Assembly (NCBI RefSeq): GCF_000143415.4
Contig: NW_003314401.1
Span: forward strand, 248,741 to 312,740
Reading direction: 5' to 3'
DNA from: Selaginella moellendorffii
Lineage: Eukaryota; Plantae; Lycopodiophyta
DNA length: 64,000 nt
Shown: piece by piece, positions 37,040 through 64,000 of the stretch
Layout of the letters: the number at the start of each line of letters is the position of its first letter
Numbering within the stretch: position 1 is the first letter of the stretch
Made by a program: the position numbers and the translations under genes
Notes under the pieces: generated by a model
Database searches by the model: none
Told to the model about the DNA's origin: nothing
What the model saw: the letters and a program-made list of their open reading frames with translations, nothing else

Positions 37040-37065
37040 TTTAGGGTTTAGGGTTTAGGGTTTAG
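37040..37065 (+). repeat. Short interstitial (TTTAGGG)n upstream of the transposase gene
   Basis: About 3.7 units, read directly. Confidence 0.9.
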
Positions 37066-50122: not shown

Positions 50123-52728
50123 GACACTTCCATGTGTCATGTGTTGGTCCTTTCTGGGTCCCTTTTTGAAGCCTCGCTTATTGCTCTCTTTGTGCTTGTT
50201 CCTCGAGCACTTCGTTGGGAGTTCCACTCCCGCTCTCGACCTTTCAAGTCGGAGCTTTTAGTCCAAACGTGTTATGCTCGTTTGGTTTTCGCTTTGGCCA
50301 CCACCACGTGGCACCCTTCCAGCTCCACTTTGGGGCCTAGGGATTTTGTGTCTCACAACTCCACCACCCATAGACGAAGTTCGATGTCCTCATCGAACGG
50401 TAAACCATTTTGTAAAGTAACACTCGCATGTGTTACCATTTCCATCCTTGGCACCTAGCCAATATTTGTCAATGGTTTGACATTGAAGGCTCACTATGCC
50501 TTTTGCATATGCCTCAATGGTTTGACACCAAAGGCTCACCATGCCTTGCCTATCCTCTAAGGAGCATAGCCTCTTCAACTTAGAGGCTCATTTGACCACT
50601 TGTGGTGGTTCTCTCTTTCTATTGGTTTAGTTCTCACTAAACTTGTTAGAGACACCTTCTCTAACTCGATCCCACTACTCGTTCTCAAGTGGTCTCACTT
50701 TCCAACACTATAACCCTTGCACTTTGGAACTTTTAATTCTGACTTCTCAAAGTTAATTTCCTAGGTGTCTCCGACACCTTGTATTGCACATATTGTGCAA
50801 CTCCACTTCCTCATCCTAGGAAGTTCTCCACTTGAGGGCACCATCATCCTCTGTTCGATTTCATGCCACTTTTGGGCACTGAGTTCCAGTTATTATATTG
50901 TGTGCTAGGGCTGTCCATGGCCCTATCTTTTGGCTACTTTGCCGCTCCTTCACCATGAGCTTTTACTTTGCCAAATTGGAGCACTTAGGAATCCATCCTT
51001 GGAAGTCCACTTCCTTTCCCACAAGCCGTTAGCATCAAACACATTAGTGTTCCTTGGCTAACTTTGCCATTTGGATCCCTTCCATTAAATTCCATGGCCC
51101 AAACTTGGCCACTAGTCCTTTGCTCCTATCCGTTGATTGTTGCACCAAGCAACATCGAATCTCTACCTCCCTCCTTGAGGTATTGTTTCGGTTCCATAGC
51201 AAAGACTCTTCTTTGCCAAGTCCGGAGGATGTTCACCCCTAGTACGTCTCTTTAGCATCTTCTGCTATGGGCTCTATCCACGGCCCAACTTCATGACCCT
51301 CCCATGGGTCTTTTATAGAGACTACTTTCCTCGGACTCACTATGCCATCGCACGGACATAGTTTATTTCCCTTAGGTGCTCTTCCCACTTGGTCATCAGG
51401 ACCAAGCCACACCACCTTAAACAGTTCAATTTCAACATTTTGAACCAGGAACTTCATTCCTTAGCCAACCAAGGACCTTGTCCTTATCTGGCCATAAGAT
51501 CACCTAGTGATCTCACCTCGGCACCTTAACAGGTTTGCTAATAGGTACTAGGTCTTCCAGACCTTTAATTTGTTACCTATGACCCCGGGGGCAACCCCCA
51601 CACTTGGCGGTGCGCCCAAGCCAGCCCTTCTGGCCAAGGGTCCATAGCAACTGAGATTAGGTGTCCCCATCTCACTCACCACGTCCTTGGTGCCACTTGC
51701 ACCAAAGCGTTCAAGTTAGATATGCCGAGCTTTCACTCTAAGCAGTCTAACCGTGCATCACGACTTCGAGGCATCCCTCGCTTGGCGGTGTGCCCAAACC
51801 AGTCTCCCCACTGAGAGTCCATGACCACCGAAATATGAGTGTCCTCATATTCCAAACCATCACCATGCCCTAGTGATTTGGGACTCGAACCCAAGCACTA
51901 GAGGGTCGGGACTCGAACCCAACCTCCGTATATGCATCTAAGCAAGCTTCAAGACCACGCTTCTGCTGCGCCACTCTGATTTCGCGCGTTCCTTGAACCA
52001 TTTACGCTTGGCCTTTCTAGGTACTAAGCTACCTAGAATTGTCTTTGAGAACCTTGAAGGAACTCTGTCCCTTAGCTTGCTAAGGCCTCCCTTTTTGCAA
52101 GCTTTCCAATTACCATATAGTCTAACATGGACAATTCCATGTTTTAGACTCTCCATGGCATCACGGTTGCTAGTGGCAACACCCTCGAGCCCCCACTTGA
52201 TTCTCCACTCCCAGCTGGCATAACCAACCTTGGTTATGCCCTTCGATTCCTATGGTTCGGTTCTATCCCCTTACTTCTTGCTTTTGGCTTCGCACCTTTC
52301 CTTCGGTCATTCTCCTCCAGACTAGGAGGATAGCTTTGCACTTTCTATCATGCCTTAGCAAAGATTCCTAGGGATGAACCAACCCAATAGCCCAGGGAGT
52401 GGTTCCTCAATCCGGGTATGCTCACCTTGTAACCCCACACACTGGGATTACATTGTTGCTTATGGGCCTTTACATGCCCATCACTAGCCTTGCCAAAGTT
52501 CTATTTTTGGCTTTGTCCAACTCGGGCAGACAGTCTTTTCCTGTCTCCGCAACCTTGGACATTTGGATAGCACCTTCTCTCCATCATTAGACTTAGTCCC
52601 TTGGGCCTTATCCATTGCCCTCGCGACATCAAACACCACCTTCTGGTGTTCTAGAGTGTTCGGGTGTCCTAATGATAGCTTTCTTGACAATGAGTATTTC
52701 CTTTTATGACATTGACTTACTATATCGC

Positions 52729-53265
52729 TAAACATATATGTACATTACCCCAATCCCAAAGGGATCAAAACAACATTGAGAGCGCACTCTCGAAGAAACT
52801 AGTGAAACTATGAGCACGAACGCCCGGCGCTGCTCTTGGGCCGTCCGCCTCCCAGGTGACTCCACCGCGGAGCTTGAAGCCACCTGCTTCGCCTTGCCAC
52901 TCCTCCACTCGGTCACAATGATGTCAGGCCAGACGAACACCATGTCGATCTAGCTCGACGTCGTCGCAGCCAAGCGGTCCAACTCGAGCACGATGACCCG
53001 GCGTCGCTCATGGGTCACTCGCCTCCAAGGTGACTCCACTGCACAAGCTGAAGCCACCTGTTACGCCCCAAGACGTGATGCTGTGTCTTGGAGCGCCTAC
53101 CTCCCCAGTGTACTTCCAACACTAAGTCGGTGCCCATTGCGAACAAACTCCAAGGCGTAGAACAAGCGAGGTGTGAGCCTCCTCCAGCTCTAGACTAGAG
53201 CGTGCTACCTTGCCTCCCACACTAGACAAGTGCGCTGGCCCCCTTCAATGATATACGAGCCCCCG
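52729..53265 (-). mobile_element. 5'-truncated non-autonomous repeat ('unit A') with 17-bp TSD
   Basis: TTGACTTACTATATCGC at 52712-52728 and 53266-53282. Confidence 0.88.
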
Positions 53266-53364
53266 TTGACTTACTATATCGCAACACAAGCAACTTATCC
53301 CCCGTAAGGGTGTATCCGACTTCCCTATGCTATTAAGAAGTCTTGGGTAGCTACCTTCTACCCG

Positions 53365-53469
53365 TTTAGGGTTTAGGGTTTAGGGTTTTAGGGTTTAGGG
53401 TTTAGGTTTAGGGTTTAGGGTTTAGGGTTTAGGCGCGTTTAGGGTTTAGGCGCGTTTAGGCGTTTAGGG
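53365..53469 (+). repeat. Telomeric (TTTAGGG)n tract ending in variant units TTTAGGCGCG/TTTAGGCG
   Basis: Direct reading. Confidence 0.97.
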
Positions 53470-54698
53470 TCAAAGACACCCCGTGGTGTTGCAATCCGGC
53501 GAGATCGCTAAACATATATGTACATTACCCCAATCCCAAAGGGATGAAAACAACATTGAGAGCGCACTCTCGAAGAAACTAGTGAAACTATGAGCACGAA
53601 CGCCCGGCGCTGCTCTTGGGCCGTCCGCCTCCCAGGTGACTCCACCGCGGAGCTTGAAGCCACCTGCTTCACCTTGCCACTCCTCCACTCGGTCGCAATG
53701 ATGTCAGGCCAGACGAACACCATGTCGATCTAGCTCGACATCGTCGCAGCCAAGCGGTCCAACTCGAGCACGATGACCCGGCGTCGCTCATGGGTCACTC
53801 GCCTCCAAGGTGACTCCACTGCACAAGCTGAAGCCACCTGTTAGCAATCCGGCGAGATCGCTAAACATATATGTACATTACCCCAATCCCAAAGGGATCA
53901 AAACTACATTGAGAGCGCACTCTCGAAGAAACTAGTGAAACTATGAGCGCGAACGCCCGGCGCTGCTCTTGGGCCGTCCGCCTCCCAGGTGACTCCACCG
54001 CGGAGCTTGAAGCCACCTGCTTTGCCTCGCCACTCCTCCACTCGATCACAATGATGCCAAGCCAGACGAACACCATGTCGATCTAGCTCGACGTCGTCGC
54101 AGCCAAGCGGTCCAACTCGAGCACGATGACCCAGCGTCGCTCATGGGTCACTCGCCTCCAAGGTGACTCCACTGCACAAGCTGAAGCCACCTGTTACGCC
54201 CCAAGACGTGATGCTGTGTCTTGGAGCGCCTACCTCCCCAGTGTACTTCCAGCACTAAGTCAGTGCCCATTGCGAACAGACTCCAAGGCGTAGAACAAGC
54301 AAGGTGTGAGCCTCCTCCAGCTTTAGACTAAAGCGTGCTACCTTGCCTCCCACACTAGACAAGTGCGCTGGCCCCCTTCAATGATATACGAGCCCCCGTT
54401 GCCGGCATCACGACAATCACAAGACTTGCAAGCCTCCGCAAACCTCCTCAAAGGACTAGCCCTGAAGCAAGAACCATGTGGGATTCCCTCCGCGAGCAAA
54501 CCAACTCGGCCATCCGCCACTGGCCCCCTTTGTGACAGCACTTCCCTGTCACTAGATCCAAAAATGCACCCATAGTGTCTTCCACGTCCATCCACCACGG
54601 ACACTTCGCTATGTCGGGATGTCGTCCCGAACTGTCCTCCACCAGTCAACAAAGTTCCCATGACTTGGTCGTGTTTCCACGACTCAAGTCGCCAAGAA
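53470..54698 (-). mobile_element. Two tandem unit A copies (53470-53843, 53845-54698); the second is fused to LINE ORF2
   Basis: Near identity with 52729-53265, 58364-59217 and 63191-63580. Confidence 0.88.
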
Positions 54699-57364
54699 TC
54701 GATTACTCCAAGTCCTCCCAAGACTCGCGGACATGCTGTAGATTGCCACGCGACCTTGGCCATGCTCCTCCCTGTGACCAGAGCGCCCCGCCACAAATAC
54801 TGACGGACCATCGTGCGTACCTTTCTAAGAGTGCGTTCTGGAACAGGCCAGATGGAGAGGTGGTACCAGATGCCAAGCAGAATGATGCTCCTAGCGACTA
54901 CCACTCTCGCTGGCAAGCCGAGTTTCCGGGGAGCCCACTTCTGGATTGACGTTCGTACCCGTCGGAGCAAGGTGTCATCCTGAAGTGCTGCACTGAACCG
55001 AGTACCAACCTGGATCCCCAGGTACCTAGCGTCTTCTCCTGGTTTGAGCCACTGGAAGCCAATGTCCTGCCCCCAAGATTCGATGCCTGGTCGCCCCCAA
55101 TTTATGCCCACTGATTTGTTCCAGTTAATTGCTGCACCAGCCGCGAGGTTGAACGTCTCCAGCGCCTTCTTAGCTGCATCCATGTTCTCCTTAGTCGCAA
55201 GTAGGAACAAGGCAGTGTCGTCCGCAAAAGCACCATCAAGGAGTTCCCGAGACACCCTTGTGGTTCCCGGAAGTTGCTGTCTCGCAGCCGGCAGTGTGAG
55301 TCCTTTAATGCGTCCGCCTTCCGCTAGAAACGTGCCCAGGGCCTCAGCCACAATCAGAAAAAGATAGGGTGCTAGTGGACACCCTTGGCGTACTGAACGT
55401 CCCAGCTGGAAACTCGGTCCCGTCTCGCCATTGATTGTGACTCTGCTTGTGGCTCCTCGGTACAGTAACGAGATCCTAGTGACCATCTCTCTCGGGATGC
55501 CGATCGTGTTCATGCACTCCTCTAGGAACCTCCAGTCCACCCGATCGTAGGCCTTCTCGAAGTCCAAAAGCCATGCTGCAGTTTGTTGGTTAGAGATCTC
55601 TGCCCATCTCTGAGCCAGCAGGTACGTCCAGATGTTTTCTGCGATTTGCCGCCCTGGAACAAACCCTGTCTGCTGCTCCCGGATGATCAGCGGCATGACA
55701 GCTTGGAGCTTGAGGGTCATTGCTTTGGCATAGACCTTGTAGGACGTGTTGAGCATGGTGATTGGCCTCCAATTCTTCAGCTCCTGCAGGTCCCCCCTCT
55801 TTGGAATAAGCGCAATCTGGCCCTCAAGGATCTCGCGAGGCAAGGTCCCATCACGTTGAGCATCCCACCATGCTTGTAGCAGCAGCGGGCCTATGGTCTC
55901 CCAGTGCTCCTCGAAGAAAATGGGCAAGAGGCCATCGATACCTGGCTGCTTGTCGTTGCTGAGCTTCCTGAGCGCTTCCCGAAGCTCCTCCAGTGTGAAG
56001 TCCGTCTTCAGTGAGTCGTGCCACTCATGGGGGACTCGCTGGGGAAGGGACGCAAGCACTTCCACCGCCGCCCTTTCCCTCTCTGGAGTCCACTGCTGGG
56101 CCGTATATAGAAGTTGGTAAAACTCCTGGGCGAGCTGTTGCATCCCCTGTTGGTCCTCGATGACTCGCCCGTCACTGTGCTTCAGTCCTAGAATGGGAGG
56201 AGAGTCCGTCACTGGCCTGATTCCCCTAAAGAAAGCCTTGTTGAGAAGGCGTTCATTCAGGGCCCATCCATCTTCCATGGCCCGGACGCCCTTGCTCCAT
56301 GCAGCGTACTCCATGTCACGTAGCTCGGCTTCACGTTCATCCAGTATTGTTTGCCACTTGAACTCATCTTGCGTGTTCAGCAACATCCTGTGTGCTGCTG
56401 CGACCTTCTTCCTGGCCAGTCTAAGGTCCTTCATCACCACCCCTTTGAGATCCTTCTGGCGCGCCCGGAGCTTCTGTGAGCAAGACAAGAGCACAGGGAT
56501 CAGTCCCAGCTTGTTCTGCGCAAGAGCGTCGTGTATAAGCCCAATTGCCACCGGGTCTCGCAGCGTGGCTCTAGTGATTGATCGCTGGACCGCTGTCCCT
56601 TTGTCCCTTTGGAGCTGGATCACGCATCTGAGGGGGTCGTGATCTGAGAAGGAGGCAAATCCCAGCCACGTTTTTAGGCTTCCCCCATCCTGCCGTATGC
56701 GAGACGAGGCGTAAATCCGGTCCAGTCTCGACTGGGAGGATACTGTCTGTCGCCTTGTAAAAGGGTGAGCATGAGGTGCGAATCCCGCAGCATGCTGAAG
56801 GTCCATGAGCCCCAGTATGTCCATGAGCTGACTCCACTGCTTCTGTTCACGTGGCTGAATTGTTTCCTGCATACCCCTGCGATCACAGACGTCCTCGACC
56901 ATGTTGAAATCTCCCAGGACCAGCCATTCATCTGCTTGCCCCTGGGCAGACTGTAACACACTCAGCCAGAATTCTGCACGTCTCCCTTTCTTCGTTGGTG
57001 CATAGACGTTGATTATCCCCACCCGTCCAAAGTGGAGGTGAAGGACAAGCAATTGAGCCTTTCCTGGGACGAGAACAAGGTGGTTTCGTACCTGAGCAGA
57101 CCATTTGGTGGAGACTACCACTGCTGTGCCCCCTCCTGGTCTGGCCACTGCTTGCGTGGCCGGGTTCCACCAGAGCCGTCCCCTCATTCCAAAGGTGTAG
57201 TCTGGGGCCACAGTCATTTTGTGCTCTTGCAAGCATAGGATGTCGATATCACCTTCTAAGCTGATCTCCCGGATGTGGGACTTGAGCTGCGCCCTTTTGT
57301 TGAGTCGACTGCCGGTCCAGCTGAGTCCCCGGCAGTTCCAGGTGACGAGCGTGAGAGTTGTCAT
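54338..57364 (-). CDS. L1/Tx1-like LINE ORF2 (APE endonuclease + RT) with chimeric C-terminus
   Basis: VTWNCRGL, LCLQEH, NVYAP, LGDFN, SRLDRIY, SDHDP; WRPITMLN, LDFEKAYDRV, VRQGCPLAP, FADD. Confidence 0.95.
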   Translation of the reverse strand: MTTLTLVTWNCRGLSWTGSRLNKRAQLKSHIREISLEGDIDILCLQEHKMTVAPDYTFGMRGRLWWNPATQAVARPGGGTAVVVSTKWSAQVRNHLVLVPGKAQLLVLHLHFGRVGIINVYAPTKKGRRAEFWLSVLQSAQGQADEWLVLGDFNMVEDVCDRRGMQETIQPREQKQWSQLMDILGLMDLQHAAGFAPHAHPFTRRQTVSSQSRLDRIYASSRIRQDGGSLKTWLGFASFSDHDPLRCVIQLQRDKGTAVQRSITRATLRDPVAIGLIHDALAQNKLGLIPVLLSCSQKLRARQKDLKGVVMKDLRLARKKVAAAHRMLLNTQDEFKWQTILDEREAELRDMEYAAWSKGVRAMEDGWALNERLLNKAFFRGIRPVTDSPPILGLKHSDGRVIEDQQGMQQLAQEFYQLLYTAQQWTPERERAAVEVLASLPQRVPHEWHDSLKTDFTLEELREALRKLSNDKQPGIDGLLPIFFEEHWETIGPLLLQAWWDAQRDGTLPREILEGQIALIPKRGDLQELKNWRPITMLNTSYKVYAKAMTLKLQAVMPLIIREQQTGFVPGRQIAENIWTYLLAQRWAEISNQQTAAWLLDFEKAYDRVDWRFLEECMNTIGIPREMVTRISLLYRGATSRVTINGETGPSFQLGRSVRQGCPLAPYLFLIVAEALGTFLAEGGRIKGLTLPAARQQLPGTTRVSRELLDGAFADDTALFLLATKENMDAAKKALETFNLAAGAAINWNKSVGINWGRPGIESWGQDIGFQWLKPGEDARYLGIQVGTRFSAALQDDTLLRRVRTSIQKWAPRKLGLPARVVVARSIILLGIWYHLSIWPVPERTLRKVRTMVRQYLWRGALVTGRSMAKVAWQSTACPRVLGGLGVIDSWRLESWKHDQVMGTLLTGGGQFGTTSRHSEVSVVDGRGRHYGCIFGSSDREVLSQRGPVADGRVGLLAEGIPHGSCFRASPLRRFAEACKSCDCRDAGNGGSYIIEGGQRTCLVWEAR

Positions 57365-57672
57365 GGAGCCACGTACTTCCAAGAAAGTGAGGAGTTACGG
57401 GGTCTCGCCCTCCATTCTGTGGAGATGGTCCACACCGCAGTCATCTTCCCCCTGTGCTTCGTCCAGGAGAAGCCTCGGACAGTGTACTTCGCAAAGCCCG
57501 TCCACTCAGTGATAGCACTCTCCATGCGTGTGTGGTAGTCTCCAATAGTGACAACCTCTGGGAAGGCTGTGTTCCCGCGGCACATCAGCCAGTCTCCCGC
57601 CTCTGTGGGACTTAATTCCCGCTTAGGGGGAATCCACCTGACCGCCATTCCTACTGTTCGAGGGAGGACCAG
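57361..57672 (-). CDS. C-terminal remnant of LINE ORF1, 5'-truncated at a telomere tract
   Basis: Open frame whose TGA overlaps the ORF2 ATG (ATGA at 57364-57361). Confidence 0.55.
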   Translation of the reverse strand: MVLPRTVGMAVRWIPPKRELSPTEAGDWLMCRGNTAFPEVVTIGDYHTRMESAITEWTGFAKYTVRGFSWTKHRGKMTAVWTISTEWRARPRNSSLSWKYVAP

Positions 57673-57692
57673 TTTAGGGTTTAGGGTTTAGG
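57673..57692 (+). repeat. Telomeric tract capping the LINE 5' end
   Basis: TTTAGGGTTTAGGGTTTAGG. Confidence 0.95.
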
Positions 57693-57910
57693 AGGTGGAG
57701 GAGGCGGCGGCGGCGCGCGGCGAATTGGGAGCTCTTCCAGAACCACTTGGCGTAGAGGTGGAGCGAGAGGATGAAGAGGATGACCGAGAAGAGGACGACA
57801 ATGGCGGCAATCATGATCTTGATGTTCACCTGGTAGGGATTGGAGTCGCTGCTGCTGGCGATGGCGCTGGAGCTGCTGCCGCTGGGATCCATTGGCGATT
57901 CAACGCCCAT
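57693..57910 (-). pseudogene. 5' fragment of an ATL-type RING-H2 E3 ligase gene, broken at telomere repeats
   Basis: KIMIAAIVVLFSVILFILSLHLYAKWFW...RRRR matches the ATL N-terminal TM + basic region; no RING domain. Confidence 0.75.
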
Positions 57911-58246
57911 TTCTCTCTCCCTCTCGATCGATCGACCGCCAAATGGGAGAAATGGAAGAATGAGAGGGATTGGGAGAAAGGAGTCGACCTAAAATGTCAC
58001 GACACAGAGCATTGGGCCAAAATTGTCAACTGGCATTTCCAAGGTCTCTCTCTCGTCCAAGTGTGTTGATTTCTTCGTCGCGGTGACGGGCGGCCCTTCC
58101 AATGGCCGGCTCGTCTCGCCTATCTCGCCCGTCGCGCCATCCACCTGACGGGCCCCGACGAGTCAACATTTCACCGTACGCGCGTGGTTCCCCTGGTGGC
58201 CCGGTGGAAAGAGCGCTGGGGTCTTAAAGTGCCACCGAATCGGCGG

Positions 58247-58346
58247 NNNNNNNNNNNNNNNNNNNNNNNNNNNNNNNNNNNNNNNNNNNNNNNNNNNNNN
58301 NNNNNNNNNNNNNNNNNNNNNNNNNNNNNNNNNNNNNNNNNNNNNN
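58247..58346. other. Assembly gap (100 N)
   Basis: Run of N. Confidence 1.
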
Positions 58347-58363
58347 CCCTAAACCCTAAACCC

Positions 58364-59935
58364 CAATCCGGCGAGATCGCTAAACATATATGTACATTAC
58401 CCCAATCCCAAAGGGATCAAAACTACATTGAGAGCGCACTCTCGAAGAAACTAGTGAAACTATGAGCTCGAACGCCCGGCGCTGCTCTTGGGCCGTCCGC
58501 CTCCCAGGTGACTCCACCGCGGAGCTTGAAGCCACCTGCTTCGCCTCGCCACTCCTCCACTCGATCACAATGATGCCAAGCCAGACGAACACCATGTCGA
58601 TCTAGCTCGACGTCGTCGCAGCCAAGCGGTCCAACTCGAGCACGATGACCCGGCGTCGCTCATGGGTCACTCGCCTCCAAGGTGACTCCACTGCACAAGC
58701 TGAAGCCACCTGTTACACCCCAAGACGTGATGCTGTGTCTTGGAGCGCCTACCTCCCCAGTGTACTTCCAGCACTAAGTCGGTGCCCATTGCGAACAAAC
58801 TCCAAGGCGTAGAACAAGCAAGGTGTGAGCCTCCTCCAGCTCTAGACTAGAGCGTGCTACCTTGCCTCCCACACTAGACAAGTGCGCTGGCCCCCTTCAA
58901 TGATATACGAGCCCCCGTTGCCGGCATCGCGACAATCACAAGACTTGCAAGCCTCCGCAAACCTCCTCAAAGGACTAGCCCTGAAGCAAGAACCATGTGG
59001 GATCCCCTCCGCGAGCAAACCAACTTGGCCATCTGCCACTGGCCCCCTTTGTGACAGCACTTCCCTGTCACTAGATCCAAAAATGCGCCCATAGTGTCTT
59101 CCACGTCCATCCACCACGGACACTTCGCTATGTCGGGATGTCGTCCCGAACTGTCCTCCACCAGTCAACAAAGTTCCCATGACTTGGTCGTGTTTCCACG
59201 ACTCAAGTCGCCAAGAACTTCCGACACATGCAGCTTCACGCTCTCCGTACCTTAGTCGCCACCTTGCATGGCCCGACCTAAGGCGAGAAATCCCGCTCGA
59301 AGCTGCGAGACCAGCAACCGTCGCGTTTCCACCATGTTGCTGCCGTGCCAACCACATGCAACGAAGATCCCTGACACTTAGAGTGGCCGGATCGAAGATC
59401 CCGCCGCCACCCTATGTCCTGCCCTAACCGCAGTTAGCCAAGAACCCTAACCCTAGCCACGAATTAGGGCAGGTGAGAACTCTGAGACCGTGAAGAATTT
59501 TTGCCTGCGCTTCTGGGAGGGTGTGAGGCTCCCTCCCAGCTATCCCCCTGTGAATTTTTGTGGAAAAATTCCTAGCCGTTCAGGAGTTATGAGCTCCCAA
59601 AAAACTTGAAACCATGAGAAGCGAAAAAAGAAGAGGAGGAGAGGAGAGCGTCCAGCTGCTGCAGCCGTGGTGTTCCTGACTGCCCTCTCCACTCCTCCAA
59701 ATCTCTAGGCCCCGAAAAACCCTAGCCGCCGCCGAAGAACCCTAAAAACAGCAGCGACCTAGGGCCAGCGAGATCTCCAGATCCGTGGCAGATCTCGCCG
59801 CGGCCTTCTAGGAGGATGAGAATCTACACTCCTAGAAGCCCCCCGTCGAAGGAATCGAGGTTTCTCCCAGCCGTTTGGGAGATATCGATAAAAACGACAG
59901 AGAGCGAGAGAAAAGAGGAGAAAGAGGAGGGAGAC
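58364..59935 (-). mobile_element. Longest unit A copy (non-autonomous, ~1.6 kb), preceded by (CCCTAAA)2
   Basis: Shares its 3' 850 bp with 53845-54698; no recognisable protein; 5' boundary approximate. Confidence 0.7.
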
Positions 59936-59986
59936 CGTTGTGCAATCCACATTCTCCGTGTGCCGTTGTCGAAACGGCATGATTGA

Positions 59987-60313
59987 TGCTATGATTGATG
60001 CTATCCTCCGGGACAGGGGGAAGCTCGAGAGGCTCGAGGAGTGGAAAAAAGCATGGCTGCCATGTTTTGGTAGAGGAGATCACAAGGAGGTTCGTTGGAG
60101 ATGGCGCCCCCCGGAGTCGATCTTGCGGTCAGCACGAAGGGGGGATATGGATCTGGACGTGATACGACGGAGACGACCACAGCCGCTTCTACTGCAGGCC
60201 TAGTCTCACTTTAGATGAGGGAGATCACCACTAGGTAGCATGAGCTTTGGGCAGCATGCCCAGTTTTTGTATTAGTCCCTACGGGACATTGGGGAATGTA
60301 CATACACGTTTCA
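59987..60313 (+). mobile_element. 5'-truncated LINE 3' end inserted in the PLE 3' UTR, 18-bp TSD
   Basis: TCGAAACGGCATGATTGA at 59969-59986 and 60314-60331; empty site at ~62509; homologous to 63600-63915. Confidence 0.88.
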
Positions 60314-60393
60314 TCGAAACGGCATGATTGAGAGCAAGTAGAGGAGGCAAAGGAATGAATTTTCATTCATTCGTGAGCGAGGGAGAGGACAAG

Positions 60394-60451
60394 AGACAAC
60401 CCAAGACCGGTTTCGTCCTTTTTGGGACTCATCAGCCGGGTGTAGTCGTCT
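60394..60451 (-). ncRNA. Minimal type I hammerhead ribozyme
   Basis: Minus strand CCCGG-CUGAUGA-GUCC-CAAAAA-GGAC-GAAA-CCGG-UC-UUGGG. Confidence 0.88.
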
Positions 60452-60580
60452 AGTGTCTACCCTAACCCTAGCTCGGTGCCGACTCTACTTATATTTTGGC
60501 TCTGTCACGTGGCGCGAGTCCGTGTGGCGGCCATGCGAAGTGGCGTGGCAGCGTTGGGTCGCGAGGGTGCGAACGTAGCA

Positions 60581-60756
60581 TGAGGGGAGACTTGGACATC
60601 GACATGATTCGCTCGAGACGACCACGTCCACTTCTACTCCAGGACTAGGTCTAGCTGCGGCATATGAGGATCACGTAGAGTAGCTCATGGAGAGGGCGGC
60701 ACGCCCATTTTTTGTATTAGTCCCATTGGGACATGGGGAATGTACATACACGTTCA
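60581..60756 (+). mobile_element. Second short LINE 3' end inserted in the PLE 3' UTR, TSD up to 20 bp
   Basis: GCGAGGGTGCGAACGTAGCA at 60561-60580 and 60757-60776; empty site at ~62756; insert is the reverse complement of 63601-63773. Confidence 0.9.
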
Positions 60757-61482
60757 GCGAGGGTGCGAACGTAGCACAGCTGGTGTTGGTTACTCCACAG
60801 CAGTGGTAGTCGCGGAGAATGACTTCGGCGGATCGCCGAAGACAGTAAGCGTTCGTCCGGCGGGTGACGTACCTTTGACGCGAGATAACTTGTGAACGCG
60901 GCATGATATGATGCATGCATTACGTCCACAATGCTTGTATCACTTGTACGTACCCGGCGACGAAAAAACCGGTTCACTTTGCAGGGAATATTCTCGGAAT
61001 ATTCCGTCGTTGACCGTTGACCCCGCGTTGACCGTGTGTGGACTGTGGTGGTGGAGGGCCTGAGGTCACTCATACATACCCGGAGTCCAGCGGTTGCGTC
61101 GGGGAGAGCCATCCCGCGAGCTGTCGGCGTGTGTCGCCGATGTCGAGGGAGCGGCACCGTTTTAACGGAATACACGCTTTTCCACGAGTCATGTGTGGAG
61201 TTCAGAGTTGAAACTCACATATTCACGATCGGAATGAAGAGCGGAATCCAACGGTATATGCCGTTTTGACTCGGTCAACAGGGATACAGTCGGAATATTG
61301 GGGAATATTCCGTTCTGACCGTTGACTCCGCGTTGACCTGGCGTTGACTCGAAAGGGGGGTGGCCTGGAGTGACTTGGGACATACCTGAAGTCCATCGGC
61401 CAGACCCTGGGAGTCATAGGGTATGCGGAGAGGGATGCAAACATATGCTTCCGTGTCTTGCAAAGTGTGGTACAAGACGTGG

Positions 61483-62313
61483 CTAAGCTCGCGGAGGGAG
61501 CTTGGCCCTGACCAGGAACGAACCGAGGTTCGGGGAGCGTCTCCAACACGTAATCACTCGGGGGAGTGTGTCTGCGGGAGCTTCATCCATCACCTGTTTA
61601 GGGTTTAGGATGTCCCCCAAGCCTAGCTGCGCGCTGTGGAGTGTGTAAGGCAGCTTGAAGGCGAGGGGGGCCCGTCGACAGGCGTCGCTAGAGCGGCGCG
61701 AACGTGCAAGGAGAGCTTGATGTCGCTGGTCGTAGGAGATGCCGGAGAAGCAGTGATGGAGGAAGGAGGTCGGGTATCCCCGGGCACGGAGGCGGTGGTA
61801 GAACCGCGTGCGCATGGTGTGGAATCCATCGGCCGTGCTCTCGCGGAGGAGGTATCTGCAGAGCTCGCTGCGGATGAATGCCACCTTCTGGTGACGTGGG
61901 TGAACCGACGTCCAAGGGAGGTACTGGTAGGCATTGAGGGGCTTCTGGAACGTGGACGAGTCGAGGCAGCCTGTCTCTTCAAAGCGAGGGCCTTTGAAGA
62001 AGTGGATATCGAGGATATCCAACTCTTCGAGCGAGATCACCGAGGTGATCTTGATCGAAGGACACAGCGTGCCGTATCCTCGGAGCCATCGTTCGAGGCC
62101 TGCTCGTGTACCTGTCCAAATGCCCACTCCGTCATCTATGTACCTTCGTAGATAGAAGGGCCAGTCGTTGGTGGCGTGCTTGTACTCGGCTTCAAGAGAG
62201 CAGAGGAAGAGACAAGCGTAGACCACCGCAAAGTTGGAGCCCATCGCTGTGCCGCGGATCTGCTGGTAGATGTTACCGTCAAACTCCACGTAGTTGTGCT
62301 CCAGGACGAGGGC
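61483..62313 (-). CDS. Penelope-like reverse transcriptase, C-terminal half; no GIY-YIG domain
   Basis: VLEHNYVEFDGNIYQQIRGTAMGS, RYIDD, LDI, QKP..YQYLPWTS.HP, RLRARGYP, LPY; stop follows without GIY-YIG. Confidence 0.92.
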   Translation of the reverse strand, partial: ALVLEHNYVEFDGNIYQQIRGTAMGSNFAVVYACLFLCSLEAEYKHATNDWPFYLRRYIDDGVGIWTGTRAGLERWLRGYGTLCPSIKITSVISLEELDILDIHFFKGPRFEETGCLDSSTFQKPLNAYQYLPWTSVHPRHQKVAFIRSELCRYLLRESTADGFHTMRTRFYHRLRARGYPTSFLHHCFSGISYDQRHQALLARSRRSSDACRRAPLAFKLPYTLHSAQLGLGDILNPKQVMDEAPADTLPRVITCWRRSPNLGSFLVRAKLPPRA

Positions 62314-62429
62314 TTTAGGGTTTAGGGTTTAGGGTTAGGGTTTAGGGTTTAGGGTTTAGGGTTTTAGGGTTTAGGGTTTAGGGTTTAGGGTTTAGGGTTT
62401 AGGGTTTAGGCGCGTTTAGGCGTTTAGGG
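62314..62429 (+). repeat. Telomeric tract ending in the same variant units as 53428-53469
   Basis: Direct reading. Confidence 0.97.
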
Positions 62430-63076
62430 TCAAAGACACCCCGCAGTGTTGCAATCCGGCGAGATTGCGGCACCACTTTGTGCAATCCACATTCTCCGTG
62501 TGCCGTTGTCGAGACGGCATGATCGAGAGCAAGTAGAGGAGGCAAGGGAATGAATTTTCATTCATTCGTGAGCGAGGGAGAGGACAAGAGACAACCCGAG
62601 ACTGGTTTCGTCCTTTTTGGGACTCATCAGCCGGGTGTAGTCGTCTAGTGTCTACCCTAACCCTAGCTCGGTGCCGACTCTACTTATATTTTGGCTCTGT
62701 CACGTGGCGCAAGTCCGTGTGGCGGCAATGCAAAGTGGCGTGGCAGCGTTGGCTCGCGAGGGTGCGAACGTAGCACAGCTGGTGTTGGTTACTCCACAGC
62801 AGTGGTAGTCGCGGAGAATGACTTCGGCTAATTGCCGAAGACAGTAAGCATTTGTCCAGCGGGTGACGTACCTTCGACGCAAGATAACTTGTAAACGCGG
62901 CATGATATGATGCATGCGTTACGTCCACAATGCTTGTGTCACTCGTACGTACCCGGCGACGAAAAACGTGGTTCACTTTGCAGGGAATATTCTGGGAATA
63001 TTCCGTCGTTGACCGTTGACCCTGCGTTGACCGTGTGTGGACTGGGATGGTGGAGGGCCTGAGGTCACTCATACAT
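62430..63076 (-). mobile_element. Second PLE 3' UTR copy, uninterrupted, with full terminal module
   Basis: Matches 59938-61077 minus the two LINE inserts. Confidence 0.88.
62589..62646 (-). ncRNA. Minimal type I hammerhead ribozyme (copy 2)
   Basis: CCCGG-CUGAUGA-GUCC-CAAAAA-GGAC-GAAA-CCAG-UC-UCGGG. Confidence 0.85.
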
Positions 63077-63190
63077 GTTCCGTGAACTGCTCACTGTTCC
63101 AAAAGACGATACCACCGCTTGCAGGCTTCGGCAAGAACAAGTGCAGACAATCTGTGCTATCTCCACCCTGACTCAAGTCCATGCAGCGCC

Positions 63191-63580
63191 CAATCCGGCG
63201 AGATCGCTAAACATGTATGTACATTACCCCAATCCCAAAGGGATCAAAACAACATTGAGAGCGCACTCTCGAAGAAACTAGTGAAACTATGAGCGCGAAC
63301 GCCCGGCGCTGCTCTTGGGCCATCCGCCTCCCAGGTGACTCCACCGCGGAGCTTGAAGCCACCTGCTTCGCCTTGCCACTCCTCCACTCGGTCACAATGG
63401 TGTCAAGCCAGACGAACACCATGTCGATCTAGCTCGACGTCGTCGCAGCCAAGCAGTCCAACTCGAGCACGATGACCCGGCGTCGCTCATGGGTCACTCG
63501 CCTCCAAGGTGACTCCACTGCACAAGCTGAAGCCACCTGTTACGCCCCAAGACGTGATGCTGTGTCTTGGAGCGCCTACG
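63191..63580 (-). mobile_element. 5'-truncated unit A copy
   Basis: Near identity with the other copies. Confidence 0.88.
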
Positions 63581-63583
63581 TCC

Positions 63584-64000
63584 CAATCCGGCGAGATCGC
63601 TGAACGTGTATGTACATTCCCCATGTCCCAATGGGACTAATACAAAAAATGGGCGTGCCGCCCTCTCCATGAGCTACTCTACGTGATCCTCATATGCCGC
63701 AGCTAGACCTAGTCCTGGAGTAGAAGTGGACGTGGTCGTCTCGAGCGAATCATGTCGATGTCCAAGTCTCCCCCACGAGCTGACCTTAGAACAGAGTCTG
63801 GGGGGCGCCATTGCCAGCGAATCTCGCCACCTCCCGATTTGCCGAAGCATGGGAGCCACCTAGATCTCCACTCCTCGAGCTGCCTCGGTTTCGCCCGCTC
63901 TTTCAGGATGGTGTAGTGAAGACGCACCGCTGCAAGAGTGAGTCTCCACCATGATGCCACCACTGCCGATATTCTCGCTTGTTGCCCATCAAAGCGACAA
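63584..64000 (-). mobile_element. Probable native 3' end of the LINE (ORF2 C-terminus + 125-nt 3' UTR, no poly-A)
   Basis: ORF ending ...RPRPLLLQD* at 63709; the same sequence is found as TSD-flanked inserts at 59987 and 60581. Confidence 0.7.

Follow-up and report, generated by a model that had tools for sequence, protein, structure and literature searches.

Telomeric Penelope-like elements of Selaginella moellendorffii as a probable landing site for L1-type LINEs

The stretch of Selaginella moellendorffii DNA considered here, hereafter the window, comprises 64,000 nucleotides of contig NW_003314401.1 (RefSeq assembly GCF_000143415.4, positions 248,741 to 312,740 of the forward strand). From position 53365 to its end it carries a chromosome-end array of a kind already published for this species, built of Penelope-like elements (PLEs), long interspersed nuclear elements (LINEs) and short tracts of telomere repeat. 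A 17-base motif, CAATCCGGCGAGATYGC, recurs through this array at the 3′ ends of different elements. An initial annotation of the window, made from the letters alone, took the motif for a 3′ tail held in common by three kinds of retroelement. We consider it rather more probable that a known telomeric PLE array has been invaded by L1-type LINEs that home to a hairpin, and that the 17-mer is this hairpin, a part of the PLE tail that is duplicated as the target site when a LINE inserts. Positions given below are those of the window.

The 17-base motif and the LINE junctions

The motif is found at 53492, 53845, 58364, 62452 (the T variant), 63191 and 63584, always exact and always on the + strand, so that the six places listed in the initial annotation all hold; shuffled sequence leads one to expect 0.01 matches in the window against the six present. 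On the element strand it reads GCGAUCUCGCCGGAUUG, and its first bases are GCGA. Five LINE-type 3′ ends meet it at one and the same bond, directly after ...GATCGC (53508/9, 53861/2, 58380/1, 63207/8 and 63600/1), and all five do so in the same orientation. Among the 262 local (G/T)CGA sites, the chance of five ends falling on one bond is 3e-7.

Two of the LINE fragments that meet the motif have it on both sides. The first, LINE1, is a 335-nt 3′ fragment of the family that we call LINE A (53509–53843, − strand), and an identical 18-mer, GCAATCCGGCGAGATCGC, stands on either side of it; this 18-mer takes in the G that comes before the motif in the PLE tail. Motif copy 1, the tail hairpin (53492–53508, −), is the left duplication copy of LINE1. 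The right copy is motif copy 2 together with its preceding G, which equals the tail base at 53491 (53844–53861, −), and this same copy also serves as the 3′ flank of the next element, LINE2. The second case spans 63191–63600 (−) and consists of motif copy 5 (63191–63207), a LINE A 3′ fragment (63208–63583) and motif copy 6 (63584–63600), so that a duplication of 17–19 nt lies on either side of the LINE. Motif copy 3 (58364–58380) is followed by a LINE A 3′ fragment at 58381–59217, the pair occupying 58364–59217 (−). The only tail still joined to its PLE is the one at 62452, which has GCAA instead of GCGA and holds no LINE; the change is a CpG transition that removes CGA. It provides an empty site at 62468/62469, where the same bond joins the motif to the PLE linker.

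Three further LINE-type insertions lie outside the hairpin, and their duplications are clean and of the size, about 10–20 bp, that the staggered cut of L1-superfamily LINEs produces. One is an off-target LINE A 3′ fragment (52715–53282, −; body 52729–53268) with a 14-bp duplication, ACTTACTATATCGC, at 52715–52728 and 53269–53282. The other two are inserted in inverse orientation in the 3′ untranslated region (UTR) of one PLE copy, PLE1. The 3′ fragment of a family that we call B (60581–60756, +) has a duplication of 16–20 bp (60561–60580 / 60757–60776), and that of family B′ (59987–60313, +) has one of 18 bp (59969–59986 / 60314–60331). Both of these have an empty site in the sister copy, PLE2, at 62756–62775 for B and at 62509–62526 for B′. 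On the element strand (G/T)CGA opens all three off-hairpin duplications (P ~1e-6), and the distal 12 nt of the motif are absent from all three insertions. The motif itself starts GCGA and measures 17–19 nt, which matches the size and the start of these duplications. Among the outcomes that the initial annotation had named as speaking against its shared module is that the module is a target site; the length of the motif, its GCGA start and its position on both sides of the LINEs agree with just that.

These junctions fit a mechanism in which two kinds of element act in turn. The RNA tail of a PLE, with its telomere-complementary end, would anneal to the G-overhang of a chromosome and be reverse-transcribed, and the resulting copy, usually 5′-truncated, would then be capped by telomerase. 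The 17-mer would be the first hairpin of this docking tail. Two or three related L1-type families that lack poly(A) (A, B and B′) would bring an APE endonuclease, which is seen for A. The first-strand primer of the LINE would end ...TCG(C/A), placing the insertion 5′ of (G/T)CGA on the element strand and giving a duplication of 14–20 bp; either the endonuclease or microhomology with the LINE RNA may set the site. A hairpin that starts GCGA would thereby be a hot spot for LINE insertion, and a LINE arriving just after ...GATCGC would have its 3′ end set against the hairpin and the hairpin copied to its other side. Repeated insertions of this sort would leave stacks of LINE fragments punctuated by the 17-mer.

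Elements of the array

Read on the element strand, the PLE tail runs from the 3′ UTR through GUGGUGCC, the hairpin GCRAUCUCGCCGGAUUGC, a 22-nt adaptor and variant repeats to perfect CCCUAAA repeats. It is present intact and uninserted at 62405–62479 (−), as variant repeats, adaptor (62430–62451), hairpin motif (62452–62468) and a linker of 11 nt (62469–62479) that leads to PLE2 (62480–63076, −). The 3′ part of a docking tail, made of variant telomere-like repeats and then the 22-nt adaptor (53470–53491), lies at 53428–53491 (−). The motif thus leads into the same adaptor and variant telomere repeats in two places, and the structure is complete only in the PLE context. Folding prediction gives the motif as a hairpin of 6–7 bp that runs on into the adaptor and the telomere-complementary repeats. 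We infer that the hairpin is native to the PLE.

Of the two PLE copies, PLE2 is a 3′ UTR only, with a hammerhead at 62594–62636, and is ~95% identical to PLE1 (59938–62313, −), which has an open reading frame (ORF) for the C-terminal part of the reverse transcriptase (RT; 61483–62313), a 3′ UTR and a hammerhead at 60399–60441. Rfam assigns both hammerheads to Hammerhead_1 (type I), on the minus strand, with 39.7 bits at 60399–60441 and 40 bits at 62594–62636 against a gathering score of 34. PLE1 is cut inside the RT at 62313, where a telomere tract begins, and its 3′ end at 59938 lacks both the last ~28 nt and the tail. The 276-aa ORF is 43–49% identical over its whole length to relatives from Closterium, Ginkgo and metagenomes, and its C-terminus ends where theirs end. 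No GIY-YIG or other endonuclease follows the RT, and the downstream ORFs carry no Pfam domain; a Pfam search of the PLE ORF itself gave no match. The nearest Atlas clusters combine HTH_animal with RVT_1, some of them with GIY-YIG, and are commonest in Rotifera, and the best match in a homolog search with the PLE fragment (53%) did not come from S. moellendorffii. As read from the sequence, the PLE carries reverse-complement telomere repeats at its 3′ end, and its truncated copies are telomere-capped (62314–62479 and 53365–53491).

Within the PLE ORF, 61597–61609 is a 13-nt complement of the telomere repeat (CTAAACCCTAAA on the element strand) that encodes L-N-P-K. We considered whether TTTAGGGTTTAGG at 61597 could be a hidden junction between units and rejected this: it codes for L-N-P-K, homology to the relatives is unbroken through it, and LNPK recurs in the Ginkgo relative. 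Because LNPK or LNPE is kept in distant relatives, these 13 nt are native coding sequence, and they could act as an internal annealing site for the G-overhang. The 3′ region of PLE1 also has an internal repeat of ~110 nt (60985–61093 vs 61292–61399, 74%).

LINE A is represented at greatest length by LINE2 (53862–57672, −), which comprises a 3′ UTR of 476 nt (53862–54337), an intact ORF2 of 1008 codons with an APE endonuclease and an RT (54338–57364, the stop at 54338), and an ORF1 remnant that is cut at 57672 and followed by TTTAGGG ×2.8. The ORF2 domains are found by Pfam (Exo_endo_phos 1.4e-14, RVT_1 1.8e-26), and the closest solved relative is human L1 ORF2p, at 7.5e-47 vs 2.7e-16 for R2. 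The stop of ORF1 and the start of ORF2 overlap as ATGA (57361–57364), which suggests termination-reinitiation. Given that ORF2 is intact and that LINE A copies are 1–3.6% apart, the family may have been active recently. Homolog searches gave a best match of 31% identity for ORF2, no match for its C-terminal third and no copy from the same genome, and exact look-ups of ten window ORFs gave no match. The LINE A 3′ UTR contains two internal repeats of 75–82 nt with ~76% identity to one another (53592–53666 / 53766–53840 and equivalents).

The initial annotation had set apart a "unit A" as a non-autonomous element of its own, and this does not stand. The sequence at 53845–54698 matches 58364–59217 at 98.5% and does so without a break past the ORF2 stop and into ORF2; the fragment at 58381–59217 (837 nt) includes the last 122 codons of ORF2. 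Because unit A is collinear with the 3′ UTR and ORF2 of the LINE, all its copies are 5′-truncated copies of LINE A. It has no 5′ head or promoter of its own and is continuous in coding with the LINE, so that a separate, SINE-like element (short interspersed nuclear element, SINE) is not what we find.

In a scan for the LINE 3′ block the window yields eight LINE-type 3′ ends: family A accounts for five, B for two and B′ for one. The second B end is unit B (63601–64000, −), which runs off the window and has no ORF2 similarity in the 400 nt visible. The annotation had read the unit at 63584 as the probable 3′ UTR of the LINE; it is indeed of LINE type, but it belongs to this second, related family. 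The further ~25 nt said to be shared between unit A and the LINE are confirmed and extend to ~62 nt at 82–85% between the LINE 3′ end and the unit at 63584. This similarity is accounted for by a 45-nt 3′ block common to A, B and B′, consisting of a 5-bp stem and then GGGGWAATGTACATA, which the PLE does not have. Pairing in the stem is complete in every copy and is kept through one double change from A-U to G-C; with three families the comparison has low statistical power. The conserved stem-loop, followed by GGGGWAAUGUACAUA, is probably the LINE families' own 3′ recognition element. No A-run stands at any of the eight LINE-type 3′ ends, all of which stop at GTT(T/C)A or GTTTCA. Since not every member of the L1 superfamily has a poly(A) tail, its lack excludes the canonical L1 tail type only.

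The large units of the array are minus-sense, with their 3′ ends proximal, that is, on the low-coordinate side, as the initial annotation had said and as both self-comparison and ORF reading of the window show. Telomere tracts lie at 53365–53427 (+), the proximal start of the chain, at 57673–57692 (+; TTTAGGG ×2.8), on the cut 5′ end of LINE2, and at 62314–62404 (+), capping PLE1. Their G-strand is on the + strand, which places the chromosome end to the right. The LINE and the PLE are 5′-truncated and capped by (TTTAGGG)n as had been described, the cuts falling at 57672 and 62313 with telomere repeats directly after. A lone (TTTAGGG)3 occurs at 37040–37060, far from the array. All eight LINE A, B and B′ copies lie in the array or at most 100 nt from it (P ~5e-5 if they were spread over the (G/T)CGA sites of the window, by our own arithmetic from site counts), and the other 52 kb of the window contain none, despite ~650 (G/T)CGA sites there. 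This points to a regional preference or to a retention bias toward the chromosome end.

An assembly gap of 100 N (58247–58346) splits the array, and we treated 53365–58246 and 58347–64000 as two contigs; the argument is independent of continuity across the gap. The first letters past it (58347–58363, +) are CCCTAAA ×2 and then C's, a polarity opposite to that of the other telomere tracts, and they abut motif copy 3 exactly at the outer edge of the motif.

Three stretches of the array belong to neither the PLE nor the LINEs as we have delimited them. The first, Z (57693–58246, −), is a captured copy of a host RING-H2 gene that runs into the gap. Over 556 nt (57691–58246) it matches, at 98% identity, an intronless RING-H2 (ATL-like) gene in a gene-rich part of GL377565.1 (GCA_000143415.2), from the region upstream of this gene through the first 220 nt of its coding sequence, and it is joined to the telomere cap through CC microhomology. 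The second, Y (59218–59937), is a non-coding stretch of 720 nt with internal hairpins, in the position that the tail of PLE1 and a right-hand duplication should occupy. Within the window it is single-copy, and Rfam gives no match. It falls into two loosely similar halves, each with a AACCCTAGCC-like motif and a hairpin of 9–10 bp, and one hairpin arm resembles the 17-mer (GCGAGATCT). Replacing the missing ~28 nt and the tail of PLE1 at the 5′ junction of a LINE, Y looks like filler or the product of a template switch. The third, X (63077–63190), occupies 114 nt between the 5′ end of PLE2 and motif copy 5. Its reading as a divergent PLE adaptor was rejected, as a local alignment was no better than with shuffles.

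Alternative origins of the motif

Several observations weigh against homing into the PLE tail. LINE2 has a telomere cap at its 5′ end where a second motif copy and PLE sequence should stand, and nowhere in the window is a hairpin-resident LINE bordered 5′ by a second motif copy with PLE linker or body. At 58364 and 63191 the motif stands apart from the PLE adaptor, as if it travelled with the LINE; beyond it lie, in the first case, the inverted telomere repeats beside the gap and, in the second, the unrelated 114 nt of X. Local evidence for PLE ownership of the hairpin is thin, with one intact PLE tail in the window and the other PLE copy lacking its tail. A predicted outer stem around the hairpin, considered as further evidence of that ownership, was discarded as too weak, scoring no better than shuffles (z -1.24).

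Some of these points could be met by an extension of homing, to which we give a tentative place, well behind homing alone. LINEs resident in the tail may read through into it, so that the hairpin, and sometimes the whole docking tail, would travel on LINE RNAs to chromosome ends, where the chimeric RNAs would be added by overhang-primed reverse transcription. LINE RNAs that carry the motif are plausible: R1Bm and R7Ag are documented examples of 3′ transduction and of read-through into the target downstream (PMC7265360). The capped 5′ end of the LINE (57672), the opening junction of the array (53365–53509), at which telomere, full docking tail and LINE follow one another, and the detached motifs at 58364 and 63191, off the PLE adaptor yet on a LINE 3′ end, would then be traces of such additions. 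The telomere cap means that an end of LINE cDNA was once a chromosome end. It may have formed when a LINE-tail chimeric RNA was added at the chromosome end; an insertion that was aborted, with loss of the distal piece and healing of the end by telomerase, would account for it as well. At both detached motifs CCC stands just outside, so that on the element strand the motif is followed by GGG and not by the CAACAC predicted from the PLE tail, and all three provable endonuclease-mediated insertions are without the motif. Both breaks fall exactly at the outer edge of the motif, which is the predicted second-strand nick and also a possible end of a motif-bearing RNA; both fit, and the anomalous flanks may have arisen in either way. 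We also considered an independent "tail RNA" joined to LINE or PLE by template jumping, and rejected it because it leaves the motif copies that lack the adaptor unexplained.

The proposal of the initial annotation, that the 17-mer is a common RT-recognition module through which a PLE, a LINE and a non-autonomous RNA cross-mobilise one another, now appears improbable. In its favour, the same 17-mer does stand by a 3′ end in LINE A, in family B and in one PLE copy, all within one polarised array. As a mark of 3′ ends the motif holds at its six sites, but it is missing from the LINE A copy at 52729–53268, from the B and B′ insertions and from the PLE1 end at 59938, that is, from three of eight LINE-type ends and one of two PLE ends. 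The three LINE-type ends are every one of those with a provable duplication. The motif of the PLE does not form the end of the RNA: it lies within the tail, with 11 nt between it and the UTR and with adaptor and repeats after it. The supposed non-autonomous partner is the LINE itself. Finally, the LINE families have a conserved 3′ stem-loop of their own, and the lack of that 45-nt block in the PLE speaks against a recognition signal used by LINE and PLE alike. What stands of the earlier picture is the telomere-associated chain, without the module shared by three elements: our analysis supports a polarised, telomere-associated mix in which a PLE without endonuclease stands together with an L1-type LINE and another family of LINE type.

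We give as little credence to the idea that part of the arrangement is an assembly artefact, with repeats collapsed or mis-joined around the gap of 100 N and where the short telomere tracts lie. Every unit is a multi-copy repeat, and the gap separates a copy of host-gene sequence from telomere repeats whose polarity is wrong. The decisive junctions, namely the duplications, the empty and filled sites, and the bonds at 53843/53845 and 63583/63584, lie inside contigs, away from the gap, and are mutually consistent. Least credible of all is the view that the hairpin belongs to the LINE families, in which case the supposed PLE tail at 62452 would be a remnant of a LINE, and a very short one, or a capture derived from a LINE, with a PLE joined to it. 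A LINE-type 3′ end adjoins five of the six motif copies, and outside PLE tails the motif is followed by GGG in families A and B, but the provable LINE insertions lack it, adaptor and telomere-complementary repeats follow it in only one of five LINE cases, and the PLE joins it at the exact bond used by the LINEs, which is expected of an insertion site and would be a coincidence for a 17-nt remnant.

Relation to known systems and significance

Endonuclease-deficient telomeric PLEs of the Athena/Coprina type have been reported in S. moellendorffii by Gladyshev and Arkhipova (2007), as cited in PMC8557442, PMC4209133 and PMC12477314, and canonical hammerheads in PLEs of this species are also on record (PMC4209133). 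The PLE described here resembles Athena and Coprina in its PLE-type RT without GIY-YIG, in the type I hammerhead of its 3′ region and in the reverse-complement telomere repeats at the 3′ end of its RNA. Its copies are likewise 5′-truncated and arranged head to tail, with short telomere tracts between them and the G-strand outward, and nothing essential differs. One difference of detail is that the hammerhead here lies ~145 nt upstream of the hairpin, not right beside the repeats.

LINEs with a specific target include Tx1L, which inserts in Tx1D of Xenopus, and R1 and R2, which insert in 28S rDNA. Mechanisms of R1Bm are among the subjects of PMC7265360 and PMC1919474. Like Tx1L and R1, LINE A is an APE LINE that uses one bond of a multicopy target, in constant orientation and with a duplication of fixed length, and as in R1 and Tx1L there is short complementarity between RNA and target at the priming site. 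It differs from Tx1L, R1 and R2 in hitting a telomeric PLE of a land plant, in the docking tail, and in its loose specificity, with off-target insertion at any (G/T)CGA.

Other non-LTR elements are tied to chromosome ends. TRAS and SART of Bombyx are LINEs specific for the telomere repeat, and HeT-A, TART and TAHRE form arrays in Drosophila. SART1Bm is covered, among other elements, in PMC7265360. As in these systems, non-LTR elements in S. moellendorffii are concentrated in a polarised chromosome-end array. The LINEs here differ in that they target the tail of a resident retroelement and not the telomere repeat. Unlike in the Drosophila arrays, nothing suggests that they maintain the chromosome end; telomerase is still active, because caps are present. 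A closer likeness in one respect is offered by the Terminons of bdelloid rotifers (Arkhipova et al. 2017, as summarised in PMC12477314), which are chains of telomeric PLE-based units with host genes between the units. The array shares with them a piece of host gene captured between units, the RING-H2 copy at 57693–58246, while its units are short truncated copies and not giant multi-gene units. SINE-LINE pairs, lastly, share a 3′ tail. Families A, B and B′ resemble such pairs in sharing a conserved 3′ stem-loop block, as partners of one RT do, whereas unit A is unlike a SINE partner in being plain LINE 3′ UTR.

That spikemoss chromosome ends carry a PLE chain has been published before. The new layer is an active-looking L1-type LINE, with its relatives, homing to one bond of the PLE docking tail. 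In a literature search we found no LINE that homes to one position of another repeat in land plants, and none with a PLE tail as its target. The window would also illustrate how a target-site duplication can imitate a shared 3′ module, and the capture of a host gene onto a telomere, together with a LINE end apparently healed by telomerase, bears on the remodelling of plant chromosome ends. If the homing of LINEs into the PLE tail is true, the array would offer a compact natural example of a retroelement whose landing pad is the functional RNA structure of another, in a genomic safe haven. If chimeric RNAs are also added at chromosome ends, an endonuclease-bearing LINE would there be borrowing the docking device of an element that lacks an endonuclease, and would help to build the chromosome end.

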